The translations under genes were made by a program, and so were the position numbers. The notes under the pieces are model-generated. The model saw only the letters and a list, made by a program, of their open reading frames with translations. It was not told the origin of the DNA and did not search any database. Positions 4,604 to 64,000 of a stretch of 64,000 bases of DNA are shown here, one piece after another; position 1 is the first letter of the stretch, and each line of letters starts with the position of its first letter. Source of the stretch: Blastocladiella emersonii ATCC 22665 (taxonomy: Eukaryota; Fungi; Blastocladiomycota); the NCBI GenBank assembly GCA_025594325.1, contig JANHCV010000004.1, positions 2,108,001-2,172,000 on the forward strand. Reading direction: 5' to 3'.

Positions 4604-5192
4604 CTTGTTGGTGGAACAGAATTTTGCTGGTGGAGAGAACAAGCAGGGCAGCGCACTTGTTCGCAACTTGGGAGGCAGCCTCAAGCTGCATTCAATCTCA
4701 GCTGCCAGTAGGCCAGCTATTCAAATCGTTGGAAAGGTTTATTGCCTCAAACCGGGATCAGCGTACTCCGTCACGCGATCTTGACATCGAGGTGGAAGGG
4801 TTCGGGCGCGCGAGCGAGGGCTCGGCGTTGAGACGTGAGACGCGTTCCGATATCATGTGACGGCCAGGGGCGATCAGCTGACGGCCTGGCCATCAGCTTT
4901 TGTACGCGGCAAGCCAAGCGTTTCTGAGCACCGACCGCGCTCAGCGTTGCTCTCTCCGCTCCCCCCGCTCCCTCGTCCTCTCCTCCTCGACCTCCCCCCT
5001 CGCCTCTCCCCGCAATATCTTTGGTGTGCCGATCCTCATCCTCCCTCCTTCGATTTTGTTCTTGGCGTGATATCCCCTCCTCCCTCCCTTCCCCCGCGAA
5101 AGTTTGAAAACGGTCCACCTCTCCTCCCGGATCAACCAACCCTACCAACCGTTCTCTCTCCTCCCACCAAAACCAACCAACCGATCAACAAC

Positions 5193-6728
5193 ATGGACTC
5201 GGACGCTGCCCCCGTTACCGCGTACCCGCAGCACGGCATGCCCCAGGCCGCGGCTGGCCCCGCGCCCGGCGGCTACGACGCGCCAGCCGGCGAGCCCGTC
5301 GTCACGATGCGCATTCTGCTCAACAGCAAGGGCGCCGGTGTCGCCATTGGTACGCGTTTGCCGTCGTCGGCGGCTTGGCGTCGTCGCGCGATCACTCACG
5401 GCTCGCTTCGTGTGCGATCCTCCTCTAGGCAAGCAGGGCGCGACGATTGAGGAGCTCCGCGAGGTGTCGGGCACCAAGGCCGGCGTGTCCAAGTCGGTCG
5501 AGGGCGTCAACGACCGCATCCTGTCGATTGCCGGCACGGTGCCGCAGATCGCCAAGGTCCGGCGCGCGTCTATATCTGGACCTACCCCCACGACCCGCGT
5601 GCTGAATCCCCTCTGGCATCCGTGTAGGCCGTCAACTTCCTCGCGCGCACGCTGATCGCGACGCCGTCCATGACGTTCCAGCCGCCGCTGCCGCCGAACC
5701 AGACGATGCTGCGTCTGCTGGTGCCCAACGCGATCATGGGGTCGGTGATTGGCCGCGCCGGCGCGCGCATCAAGCAGCTGCAGGACGCGCACGGCGTGCG
5801 CCTCGTGGCGACCAAGGAGCCCCTGCCGGCGTCCACGGAGCGCCTGACCGACATCACGGGCACGCCCGAGGGCATCGAGGGTGCCGCGACCGAGGTCGCG
5901 CAGGCGCTCGCCGACGACTGGGACCGCGTGTGCCAGTCGACGACGCTGTACGACCCGCGCGTCCGCATGCGCCACACGCTCGGCCCCGCCGCCGGGTACA
6001 TGCCGCAGCAGCACCCGCAGCAGCAGCAGCAGCAAGGCGGTATGGTGTCGCCCGCGGTCGCGGGTCCCGTCGCGCCCGTCAACGGAGCCGGCGCACAGCA
6101 GGCCGCGTACGCGCCCCGCGGCGGGTTCCACGGCGGCGCCGCCTCGGCCGGGTACCCGGCGCAGCAGCAGCAGCCGGCGATCCCCGCTGCGGCCGGCGCG
6201 CCGCTCGCACAGGGCCGGCAGCACCACGCGCGCGGTCACCACGCGCACCACCAGCAGCACCATCAGCAGCACCATCATCACCAGCAGCAGCACCAGCCGC
6301 AGCAGCAGCACGGCGGGTTCCACGGCGGCGCCGGGACGCACTCGCGCGGGCACACGGGCGACTTCATCCCGCGGTCCGACGACCCGAACGCGGTGACGCA
6401 GATGCTGGCGATCCCGGCGGGGCTCGTGGGCAGCATCATCGGCAAGGCCGGGTCGCGCATCGCCGAGATCCGCGAGGCGTCGGGCGCCAAGATCGCCATC
6501 TCCAAGATGCAGAACGAGAACGGCGAGCGCACCTTCACCATCGTCGGCACCCAGCCGCAGAACGACGTGGCTCTCAAGATGCTGTACGACCAGCTCACGC
6601 TCGAGAAGAACAAGCGCGTCGCCATGCAGCAGCAGCAGCAGGCCCAGGCTGCTGCGGCCGCGGCGGCCGCGACCGAGGCTCCGGCTGTGTCCGCGGACGA
6701 GCAGCCGGCTGCCTCGGCGGCGCAGTAG
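5193..6728 (+). CDS. Triple KH-domain RNA-binding protein (hnRNP K/Pbp2/Hek2-like)
   Basis: Three KH motifs: GVAIG|KQGATIEELRE, GSVIGRAGARIKQLQD and GSIIGKAGSRIAEIRE. Two short introns near 5351-5428 and 5557-5628. Q/H-rich linker. Confidence 0.9.
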
Positions 6729-7092
6729 TTCAAACTTTCCCCCTTCTTCCCTCAACGTAGCGATTATCTCTGCCTATTCTTTTTGGTATCCCCCCTCCTT
6801 CGTCTGTAACATGATCTTCTCCCTCCCTGTGTGACGCCATCGTTTCAGCTGCCTCGCAGGATGTCTCGCGCGGCCGATTGACGCGTTGCGCCACACTTGC
6901 GACCTCGCTCCATGGCCCACGCGGGCCGCGTGCATGGTCGGAACGAACCGCGCGCGTGCGAGCGTTTCAGCACCCGCATGTGCGCGTGCTCTCGCCCTCG
7001 GCGAGGAAAGTCGGCGTCGACCTTGCGCGGCACCGGCCGTTGTCTCTGTGGCACAGCCGCGGGATCTGGTTGAGTGAGGCGGGCGGCCGGGG

Positions 7093-7099
7093 TATAAAA
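7093..7099 (+). promoter_or_regulatory. TATA box of the small secreted peptide gene
   Basis: TATAAAA in a very GC-rich context, 65 nt upstream of ATG 7164 and followed by a pyrimidine-rich 5'UTR. Confidence 0.75.
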
Positions 7100-7163
7100 C
7101 CTGCTCTACCCCGCCCATCGTTCTCTTCTCTCTCCAAAGCCAACTCAACCAAGAGCTATCAAA

Positions 7164-7349
7164 ATGCGCACCGCCACCGCCGTCCTCCTCGTCGCGTACC
7201 TCGTCGCCCTCGTCGCCACCATGGCCGCAGCCGCGCCGGCGCCCGAGCGCAACAGCCCCGTGGGCGTCGACCCGAACAAGGCGCCGCAGGACCAGGAGTT
7301 CAACCTCATCATCGTCAAGCAGTTCTGCAAGCTGACCGGGTGGTGCTAA
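7164..7349 (+). CDS. Small secreted prepro-peptide (61 aa) with C-terminal C-x5-C loop
   Basis: TATA box, CAAAATG start, hydrophobic signal peptide ending AAA, and typical biased codons. Sequence ends QDQEFNLIIVKQFCKLTGWC. Confidence 0.8.
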   Translation: MRTATAVLLVAYLVALVATMAAAAPAPERNSPVGVDPNKAPQDQEFNLIIVKQFCKLTGWC

Positions 7350-7610
7350 GGCGATCGTGGACAACGGGCCGCAGGCGTGGAAGCAAGTGCAAGTGATGGC
7401 CAAGGAGTGTGTGTGCGAGGAGGAGCAATGTAACAATACAACTACCAGTACTATCTCCACGATCTCGCGCACGACGAGGTGAGGGTGTCTGAGCTCGTAC
7501 AGCTCGCGCTTGCGAGGAGGATCAGGGGTCGGTGCGCATGCACCATCCCTTGGCGTCCTCGGCGACTCGGTCGTGCAAAATCAATCAGTTACATTGCTCA
7601 TCGACCCATC

Positions 7611-8675
7611 TCAGCACCGGTCCGACAGCCACGCGATATAATCGCCAACGAGCGTCTCGTACAGGTTCTGCTCGTTGTGGAGCTCGTGCTTGAACCCGTG
7701 GTACATCTTGAACGTGACATCGCTCCACCCCTCCTCGACGCGCGCCGCCGCAAACGCCTGCGTCGCGGGCGCGTACGTGATCGGGTCGCGGTCGCCGTGC
7801 ACGAGCAGCAGCGGGACCGACTTGGCGGCGAACGTCGCGCCGGGCGCGCGCAACGCCGCGCCCGCGTCGAGGATCCCCTCGCCCGCGATCAGCGACAGGT
7901 ACCCGTGCACCAGCGGGTCCGCGCGGTACGCGGCGATCGCCGCGTCGTCGTGGCACAGGCCGTGCAGTTCGACTGGGTTCGCGATCGAGTGCGCCGGGAT
8001 GATGTGTTTGACGACGCGCAGCAGCGCGACCGCGGGCGCCGCGGGCTTGGAGGCCGGCCACACGTCGATGGCGGGGGCTACACGTACAAGTGGAGAGCGA
8101 TGAGCATTTCGTGGGGGGACGGCACGCGATCGCAGTGCGTACCGCTCGAAATGACCCCCGCGAGCATCACCTCGCTCCCAAACTGGCGCAGAAAGTCGAG
8201 CACAATGAGCCCGCCCATACTATGCCCGACGAGGAACTGCGGCAACCCGTCGACCGCGTTCCGCTCCACGGCCTCGCGCACATCCGCAAGCACCACGGGC
8301 CAGCCGCCCGTATGGCCGAGCTCGGCGCCCGCGTTCTTGCGCACCGTGCGGCCGAACCCGCGCTGGTCCCACGCGTGGACCCGGAACCCCGCCGCGGCCA
8401 GCGGCATGAACACGTGCCGGTACCGCTCAATGTGCTCGCCCAGGCCGTGCACCCACGTCAGCGTCGCGCGCGGCGTCACGCCGTGCTAGAGCGCGCGAGG
8501 CGGGCGAAGGAGGGTGAGCGGGGTGGAGTTGGTGGGGGAGGGGTTAAGGCGGGCGTACAGGGACCTCCCACGTCCGCGCGTACACGACGTGCCCGTCGCG
8601 CAGCGTGAGCCACTCACCGTGCTCGAGGTCGAGCAGCGGGTCGGTCGTCGCCGGGGCAGCTGAGCCAAAGACCAT
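7611..8675 (-). CDS. Alpha/beta hydrolase, monoglyceride lipase/lysophospholipase family
   Basis: Motifs VHGLGEH, DQRGFG, nucleophile elbow GHSMGG, HGDRDPIT and HELHNE. Several short introns. Confidence 0.9.
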
Positions 8676-8996
8676 GTTGTTGAAGATGCGGGTTCAGGAC
8701 GTTCGGGACGTTCGGGAGAGAGAGAACTGATCCAACGGCGCTCGTTCGAGAAGTTTGCCAGCACTCGCCGAGCGTGTTACATGCGATACAGTGACGTCGT
8801 TGAGAGAGCGAGGCCGACGTTTTCACGCGTCGGTCAAGTCGGAAGCGCCGGGACGGAAAACGCGCCACGTTTCGGGTTGGCGTCGCGACGGGTCACCCGG
8901 CGCCGCGTGACCTCAAATCAACACGCTGCTGCGCCGCGTCGCGTCGTTTTCGCGTCGCTCGTCTCATTCACGGCGCCACCAACGACACGACACACC

Positions 8997-10038
8997 ATGG
9001 ATAACATTGACCCGCGACTCGCCGCACACGCCGCGTCGTTCTGGGGATGGAGCGACGACGAGGCCGAGGCCGAGGTGGCCGCTGCCCCGGCGCCCGTCCA
9101 CGACAAGAGCGGCCGCGAGGTTGCGGTGCCTGGGCGCCACGTCGTGGACGATATGCGGAGCGACGATGAAGAGTTTGATGGGAGCGACGACGACAGTATG
9201 GATGAGGATACCGACGATGAGGCGGAGGTCAACGCCGTGACTGCCTCGCTCACGGCGACCAAGCCGGCGGCTGTGCGGAAACCCGCGCCGCAGGTGGTCG
9301 TGTTCGAGGACCCGACCAAGGCCAAGGCCGGCGGGAACCTGTACGAGTTCAAGAAGTTCATGAGCTCCAAGGTCGCGACCGTCACCAAGACGGCGCCACC
9401 ACCACCGCCGCTCACGTCCGAGGAGGCGGTCGAGGAGGCGTACGTGCGTCTCGTATCCCCGAATCCGCTCCGATCGTTCACGCAGCAACCCGCAATCTAG
9501 TGAGCTCAACATGCAGGACCGCGAGCTCGACGACCTGATCAAGACGAGTAAGCTGATTGAGGAGTTTGCCGCGGACGAGCTGGTGGGCCGGGACCGGCGC
9601 AAGTACCAGATGTACAAGCTCGAGGAGCTGGGCATGAAGGGCAAGAAGGCCAAGATGCCCGAAAAGGAGCGGCACCAGATCCGCACCCGCGACGCGACGC
9701 TCGAGCGCAAGGCGCTGTCGCGCATCGAGGAGCTCGGCCTCGACACGCGCGCCGTCAAGAACGGCCTGACCACGGCCCGCGCCCTCGCCCGCAACGTCTC
9801 GGACAAGAAGGCCACCTCGTTTGACAAGGTCATCTCGTTTGCCGAGTTTGGCAAGAAGAAGGCCCCCTCCAACAAGCCCGTCAAGAAGCGCGACCGCGGC
9901 ATCAAGGGCGCCGCCGTCGGCCGGTTCAAGGACGGCATGCTCACCCTGTCCAAGCGCGACATTGAGCGCGTCCAGTCGTCGTCCGCCTCGACCAAGGCCA
10001 AGGCCAAGGGGAAGGGCAGCAAGGGCGGCAAGCGGTAA
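8997..10038 (+). CDS. Nucleolar 40S biogenesis factor, Faf1/C1orf131-like
   Basis: Acidic N-terminus, PQVVVFEDP and DRELDDLIKTSKL. Basic C-terminus RDRGIKGAAVGRFKDGMLTLSKRDI. One intron near 9442-9500. Confidence 0.7.
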
Positions 10039-62472: not shown

Positions 62473-64000
62473 GATCGCTGTCCGGGCAAAATATACGTAT
62501 CATCGATTCCTTTATCACAGCATTCTCTTTTCGGCGCTGCAAGGACGGTGGAGTGCAAGGCGAGCCCGCGTCGTTCAGCTGCACGTGGGCCGGCGGGGCA
62601 TGGAACGCACCCACTGCGAGCGCCGCCGCTTCGTCTCTCGCCGACTCCCATGGAACAAGTCTGATTCGAATCGCTTACATGCATAACTTGGCGCAAACTG
62701 GTTGCAGGCGCATGTTGATGACGGTGCCCAAGACCATGGCAAAATGCAACGCTTTGGCACCACCCTCGTGAAGCGCGAGAAGCAACCTTGAACGTCACGC
62801 CCATGGCGCTCGCGTCAATCGCGACGGCGCTCAGAACCCAATCTGTTTCAACTTGATGAGGCGTTTGTGTTCCCGCGTGGTCATTTAAAGGAGCTGGAAG
62901 CTTGGTTTGCTCGGCGCGCAAGTCCGGCCCCGCGCGCGAGTTTGCGACGTCAAGTGCGACCGAGCAGGCTACTTTTATAGCAGTGTGCGATGCACAGTTG
63001 CTTGCACTAGTCATGCTACTAGGCAACTCTAAGGAGGTGTCGGCGTCATTGCCTGCCACTACAGTCACAGACCGGTACGTTCCAACCGCTCACATTCAGT
63101 GCGCCACCGTTTCCACCCCGTCCTGGACTTTCCGAGACGCTCCTGTCCATGCCAAACTGTCCGCAGACGGAAAGCACGTTTACAAACAGTGGCTAACGTT
63201 CAGACACACGAAACTTACAGGCAACACCACGGCTCAAGATCCAACACGTCGCCCATACTTGTGATACTTCTTGTGCATTCATTTCCACCCGGCTGTATCG
63301 CGGAGCTCCAGTTGATATCTCGCACACGAACACAGCTCAGGGCTTCTTCAACATCACCTTCGAGTACGGGCGAAGCCAAGCTCTCCACTACGGTAACCCA
63401 GTTCATGGGCTCGGACGAGACGGGGAAGCTTCACTTGCAGCCTCAGCGCGCTCCGATCAACCAATTCGCATGCTGCTTCAAGAGCTACACGAGCGCGGCA
63501 AGATCGACGAGACCGATTCACTTCCCAGTGTAACTTTTCCCGCTCGCGCACGACGCTGGTTACCGCAGCGCTCGCCCAGGCGCCATGAAAAGCGCGTGTC
63601 ACTTGCGCGGGCGCTGCGCAACGAATGCGCCGCTGTCGATGCGGGTGTTGGTATGCTGGAACGTGAGATCGTCGATGTCCGAACCTGTAAATAGAAGGGT
63701 GATGTTACGTACCTTGCGTGAGTGACAAGTCGAAGATCGTTGAAGGAAGAGAAGGGTCGCGATGGTCACCCGCACGTGGGCCAGGTGATGATGAAGTCAC
63801 GGTGGCCAGGCCCACGTCGGCTTGTCCTCTCACCGATCCCATGAATCTGCATTAATACGGCATGCCTGCATTTACGACTTGGCGCAACGACTTCACAGGC
63901 GTTTGTTGCAAACGGTGCTCTGCGCTAGAGGCGGCCGAGACCCGACGTGCGACGCGGCGCTCAACTCGGGAGATCAAGTGTTGTCTTGCCACTGCTGCAA

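Follow-up and report, generated by a model that had tools for sequence, protein, structure and literature searches.

A candidate gene for a small secreted peptide with a C-terminal Cys-x5-Cys tail in Blastocladiella emersonii

The locus and its coding evidence

We analysed a 64-kb stretch of DNA from Blastocladiella emersonii ATCC 22665 (hereafter the window), which has a G+C content of 66%. The short gene described here is flanked by two larger, spliced genes, which we searched exon by exon. Upstream, an hnRNP K-like KH-domain gene occupies 5104-6728 on the plus strand; its NCBI protein has 461 aa, with KH domains separated by a long low-complexity stretch rich in His and Gln, for which the Allomyces orthologue has an Ala-rich one. 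Downstream, a convergent Hydrolase_4 gene (monoglyceride-lipase-like, S33) occupies 7611-8675 on the minus strand and, at about 8486-8564 and 8078-8142, is interrupted by two short GT..AG introns. The stop codons of this gene and of the peptide gene are only 261 nt apart, so their 3'UTRs may overlap. Between these neighbours we recognised the following features.

7093-7099, plus strand: TATA box TATAAAA, 65 nt before the start codon, of a type rare in the 64-kb window
7100-7163, plus strand: C/T-rich leader read from the sequence, the putative 5'UTR with the presumed transcription start
7164-7349, plus strand: single-exon ORF of 61 codons followed by TAA (7347-7349), recognised by its codon-position G+C and present in single copy
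7164-7232, plus strand: predicted signal peptide, residues 1-23, from a rule-based -3/-1 check and hydropathy
7233-7298, plus strand: Pro-rich, mildly acidic linker or pro-piece, residues 24-45, APAPERNSPVGVDPNKAPQDQE, net charge -2, predicted coil
7299-7346, plus strand: hydrophobic tail, residues 46-61, FNLIIVKQFCKLTGWC, charge +2, within a predicted helix at 41-58
7326-7346, plus strand: Cys55 to Cys61, spaced for a possible seven-residue disulfide ring, CKLTGWC, the disulfide being putative

A preliminary description of this DNA had reported a TATAAAA element followed by a 61-aa ORF, and both are present, at 7093-7099 and 7164-7349 on the plus strand. TATAAAA occurs twice in the 64 kb against 0.14 copies expected, and none of 100 shuffles contained two or more; TATA-containing promoters are rare in the window. 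A G+C-rich stretch containing GGGCGG lies directly upstream of the TATA box at 7093-7099. No ATG was found between the TATA box and position 7164, and the ORF start carries an A at -3 (caaaATG). In yeast, TATA-containing promoters mark regulated, stress-type genes; an inducible secreted peptide would therefore fit the promoter seen here. A scan for bacterial promoters and terminators found nothing, the models being bacterial and irrelevant for a eukaryotic host.

The length of an ORF is no proof of a gene here, because open frames come cheaply in a genome this rich in G+C: 45 ORFs of 30 aa or longer overlap the interval 5500-9000. The case for a gene is carried by base composition at the three codon positions. 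The G+C fractions of the peptide ORF are 0.66, 0.46 and 0.98 at positions 1, 2 and 3, which is the pattern of B. emersonii genes (GC1 about 0.65, GC2 about 0.45, GC3 about 0.95-1.0), and third-position G+C in the neighbouring hydrolase exon is 0.95-1.00. All codons except one (60 of 61) end in G or C, for which a binomial estimate with an assumed intergenic G+C of 0.62 gives a chance of about 1e-11. The antisense ORF at 7145-7312 has the mirrored pattern, with low GC1 and high GC2, as is the case for spurious ORFs lying antisense to real genes.

Codon periodicity sets in at about the ATG at 7164 and is gone after the TAA at 7347-7349. In 7350-7600 no periodicity was found in any frame, up to the end of the convergent hydrolase gene at 7611, and therefore no hidden exon lies downstream of the peptide ORF. 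On the other side the frame is closed by a TAA at 7095-7097, which lies within the TATA box and is in frame with the ORF. The other small ORFs of the window with a sense-type pattern are pieces of larger genes, and none of them has a strongly hydrophobic N-terminus as this one does. The genome contains one copy of the locus, whether searched as DNA or as protein. The 61-codon ORF is very probably a real gene.

The suggestion that such a small gene would have been missed by gene callers did not hold, as the exact 61-aa protein is already recorded as a prediction from the 2.51-Mb contig. Since the genome annotation used ab initio predictors within funannotate (PMC9730499), this gene call is no evidence of expression. 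The same genome paper mentions 23,370 B. emersonii ESTs, citing Ribichich et al. 2006, and reports an assembly of 34.27 Mb in 21 contigs (PMC9730499); the genome copy that we searched comprises 32.65 Mb in 21 contigs and may thus have part of its sequence masked or withheld.

Anatomy of the predicted peptide

The N-terminus of the 61-mer is built from an n-region MR, a run of 22 uncharged residues (3-24), a c-region TMAAA and then Ala-Pro-Ala-Pro. The strongly hydrophobic core within it spans about V7-A18, some 11-15 residues, and the maximum of a 19-residue Kyte-Doolittle profile is 2.44, in the transmembrane range. The -3/-1 rule is satisfied at A23|A24, an AxA-type site and the likeliest cut, and a cut at 24|25 is ruled out because Pro would stand at +1. 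A charge-balance check of the residues flanking the hydrophobic stretch places the N-terminus in the cytosol and the C-terminus outside it. By these rules, residues 1-23 are likely a cleaved signal peptide with its cut at A23|A24.

The main alternative is that the hydrophobic stretch stays uncleaved and serves as the N-terminal anchor of a small single-pass type II membrane protein, with the remaining 38 residues exposed as a tail on its luminal or outer side. The unbroken run of 22 uncharged residues and the transmembrane-range hydropathy maximum agree with an anchor, as does the AlphaFold2 model made from the single sequence, in which residues 2-23 form one continuous helix. However, the strong core is short for this role, at just 11-15 residues or so, and is followed by a c-region of small residues, an AxA site and Pro, the usual build of a cleaved signal; moreover, the protein matches no known micro-membrane-protein family. 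We regard an anchored protein as unlikely, though less so than the other alternatives weighed below. The signal peptide proposed in the preliminary description thus stands as a secretory-type N-terminus by hydropathy and the -3/-1 rule, for which cleavage seems more probable than anchoring.

With cleavage at A23|A24 as the preferred reading, the predicted mature product is a 38-mer of two halves. The same AlphaFold2 model (mean pLDDT 66) suggests a coil at residues 24-40 with pLDDT 54-56 and a helix at 41-58. The peptide strings quoted earlier are each contained exactly in the translation, as residues 24-45 (APAPERNSPVGVDPNKAPQDQE) and 46-61 (FNLIIVKQFCKLTGWC). The first of these is indeed a Pro-rich, mildly acidic pro-piece with a net charge of -2, the terminal C-x5-C is formed by Cys55 and Cys61 at the very C-terminus, and the absence of a KR site was confirmed, with neither KR nor RR in the translation. 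A wider search for the dibasic pairs KR, RR, KK and RK across all 61 residues found none. Likewise, we found no N-glycosylation sequon in the predicted mature 38-mer and no repeats in the 61-mer. Cys55 and Cys61 are its only cysteines, and since the predicted topology is extracytoplasmic, they may be joined in a disulfide.

The tail had also been called cationic and amphipathic. Its charge of +2 bears out the first word for the 16 residues taken by themselves, but in the predicted mature 38-mer this charge is balanced by the -2 of the spacer to give a net charge of 0, and the hydrophobic moment of the tail does not rise above that of shuffled sequences.

Comparison with brevinins

The Rana box of frog skin peptides is a conserved C-terminal, disulfide-bridged cyclic heptapeptide, and brevinin-1 peptides combine it with an N-terminal FLP, a Pro hinge near position 14 and a net charge of +3 to +4 (PMC7464788). 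A natural example, brevinin-1PLb, ends in ...KIFCAITKKC (PMC7464788); we used this 24-residue peptide for hydrophobic moments and its 10-residue tail for identity. The fungal peptide shares with brevinin-1 the layout of its precursor, namely a signal peptide, an acidic spacer and a short, hydrophobic, cationic peptide. Its tail also has the spacing of the Rana box, Cys-x5-Cys at the seventh-last and last residues, a likeness of spacing only. When the fungal KQFCKLTGWC is set against KIFCAITKKC, five of the ten residues are identical and one further position is an I/L match, but the fungal ring has Gly and Trp where the frog peptides have their two ring lysines.

On the Fauchere-Pliska/HeliQuest scale, the fungal 16-mer has a hydrophobicity H of 0.912, a moment of 0.359 and a charge of +2, against 0.834, 0.310 and +3 for brevinin-1PLb, for which our script reproduces the published values. 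A released 16-mer would be brevinin-like in its bulk properties. However, when its residues are shuffled, 22% of the shuffles reach the same moment (39% on the Eisenberg scale), and forms longer than the 16-mer are neutral and less amphipathic.

Several further features set the two apart. The KR site that in brevinins separates the mature peptide from its acidic propiece is absent from the fungal 61-mer, as are the FLP N-terminus and the Pro hinge, with no Pro after residue 41; and against the brevinin charge of +3 to +4, the fungal tail has +2 and the mature 38-mer 0. Searches of Pfam (E<=10) and of PDB sequences (E<=10) found no homology to the frog skin active peptide signal/propeptide family or to families of mature frog peptides. 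In the ESM Atlas feature search, the score to the frog precursor cluster was 0.75, a range that shuffled proteins reach. Membership of the brevinin family was rejected on three counts: no precursor homology, no KR and no FLP.

Because the host is a fungus, any likeness to the frog peptides would be convergent. As far as the residues go, the likeness is a short, convergent-looking tail motif picked out after the fact. The brevinin/Rana-box-like loop of the preliminary description therefore keeps its ring spacing, its five of ten tail residues and its bulk properties, but has no sequence-family link to frog peptides. A functional analogy to brevinins is at most conceivable.

A specific form of this analogy is that the disulfide-looped tail of about 16 residues is released and acts, by convergence, as a brevinin-like membrane-disrupting antimicrobial. 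The five tail residues identical to brevinin-1PLb and the similar H, moment and charge of the 16-mer speak for it. Against it stand the lack of any recognisable cut site, dibasic or other, ahead of the tail, the replaced ring lysines and missing FLP, a moment that 22% of shuffles reach, the zero charge of the 38-mer, and a resemblance chosen after the fact and without a Pfam or PDB sequence match. We consider a released antimicrobial of this kind improbable. The same grade applies to the broader idea that an early-diverging zoosporic fungus independently evolved a secreted, disulfide-looped Rana-box-type peptide, with a hydrophobic cationic tail, for membrane-active defence or zoospore signalling, processed without a dibasic site.

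Search for relatives

Relatives of the 61-mer were sought at several levels. A word-index search of 5.8e9 proteins and a HMMER search of 1.84e9 cluster representatives (E<=0.001) each returned the 61-mer itself alone. In its own genome, translated in six frames and searched with the 61-mer and with its mature part (E<=10), only the self match was found and no paralogue. A scan of JGI metagenomes gave 600 pattern matches, of which 0 were confirmed by tblastn. In Pfam (E<=10) the sole match was irrelevant, at E 1.1, and neither the mature part nor the tail matched; PDB sequences (E<=10) gave no match. The best ESM Atlas feature score was 0.78, which a third of shuffled proteins exceed, and the mature part returned nothing. 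That the peptide was undescribed is borne out by the protein, own-genome, metagenome, Pfam and PDB sequence searches, in which no described relatives appeared.

By its sequence the peptide gene is thus without detectable relatives among predicted proteins. The word orphan is used here in the sense of none detectable, because with a query of 61 residues divergent orthologues fall below a library-wide E-value cut; short, divergent or uncalled orthologues could exist in other blastoclads.

The upstream KH gene, in comparison, has orthologues in a blastoclad from a JGI metagenome (47% identity), in Sorochytrium, in Allomyces arbusculus and in Allomyces macrogynus. We compared the contigs around the orthologues from the metagenome blastoclad, Sorochytrium and A. 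macrogynus, leaving out A. arbusculus. The genes downstream of the KH orthologues differ (Aha1, RRP36 and PP2C), and no comparable small ORF was found downstream of the KH orthologue in these three contigs. Since gene order is not kept at that distance, synteny speaks neither for nor against conservation of the peptide.

The lack of relatives, in a 66% G+C genome rich in long spurious ORFs (the 45 overlapping 5500-9000), is what could suggest a non-functional frame, one that is decaying or arose by chance, or else an exon belonging to a larger gene that was mis-modelled. We give this little credence, as the local non-coding DNA does not produce 98% G+C at third positions together with sense-type GC1 and GC2, the periodicity is bounded by the ATG and the TAA in a frame closed on both sides, and the TATA box and first-ATG context suit a stand-alone gene.

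Proposed mechanism and comparison with known systems

Taking these observations together, the account that we favour, with rather modest confidence, is a single-copy, TATA-driven gene for a secreted pre-peptide of 61 residues, whose 38-mer would act outside the cell through its tail. Transcription would start from the TATA promoter, and the 61-residue pre-peptide would enter the ER co-translationally. Signal cleavage at A23|A24 in the ER would then release the net-neutral 38-mer. Its N-terminal half is predicted to be flexible, Pro-rich and mildly acidic, and its C-terminal half to be a hydrophobic helix with a charge of +2, ending in Cys55-x5-Cys61. In the secretory pathway Cys55 and Cys61 would be oxidised to close the seven-residue ring. 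After export of the 38-mer, the C-terminal helix together with the ring would presumably be the active end, binding a membrane or a receptor.

Among known systems, lineage-restricted small secreted peptides of fungi are alike in their short gene, signal peptide, Cys-containing mature part, lack of a known domain and restriction to one lineage. Judged by its predicted features, the locus is an ordinary gene of this kind. The precursors of fungal peptide pheromones are likewise small precursors of an extracellular peptide, and their X-Ala/X-Pro spacers are trimmed by a dipeptidyl aminopeptidase. The AP-AP dipeptides that follow the predicted cut recall such spacers.

Other assignments were tried and rejected. 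A precursor of the alpha-factor type was set aside since the 61-mer has no Kex2 sites and no repeated cores, and a lipopeptide of the a-factor type since it has a hydrophobic N-terminal signal and ends in ...GWC followed by the stop, with no CAAX. CAAX prenylation as such fails for lack of the AAX. For a fungal RiPP precursor, repeats and dibasic sites are missing, and in place of tailoring enzymes the gene is flanked by those for a KH-domain RNA-binding protein and a Hydrolase_4 esterase. The N-terminus is too hydrophobic for a mitochondrial presequence and has one Arg only, while a GPI signal would call for a longer and less polar tail. An origin from a repeat or transposon was rejected because the locus is single copy. 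Lastly, a functional link to the S33-family hydrolase was rejected, its gene being convergent and having no evident signal peptide.

The secreted peptides of Blastocladiomycota are little known, and B. emersonii is under development as a model for zoospore sensing. In this setting, a peptide with a defined tail, once its secretion was verified, would provide a probe for studying defence or signalling between cells in the lineage, and, if active, would suggest convergence with the host-defence peptides of amphibians. For now, the gene appears to be one among many unexplained lineage-restricted small secreted peptide genes of fungi. Its main value lies in a well-supported small gene model whose function could be tested cheaply with a synthetic peptide.

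Other observations

The second TATAAAA of the window lies at 62972-62979 on the minus strand, within a stretch of lower G+C. We found no ORF with coding periodicity after it on that strand; the element could have arisen by chance, or it could drive a transcript that is non-coding or very short.

Apart from the self match, the orthologue closest to the KH gene comes from JGI sample 3300047125, on the A+T-rich, 19-kb contig Ga0499901_0533, with 47% identity over 93% of the query. The source of this contig seems to be a blastoclad relative, uncultured or unlabelled, whose base composition is very different.
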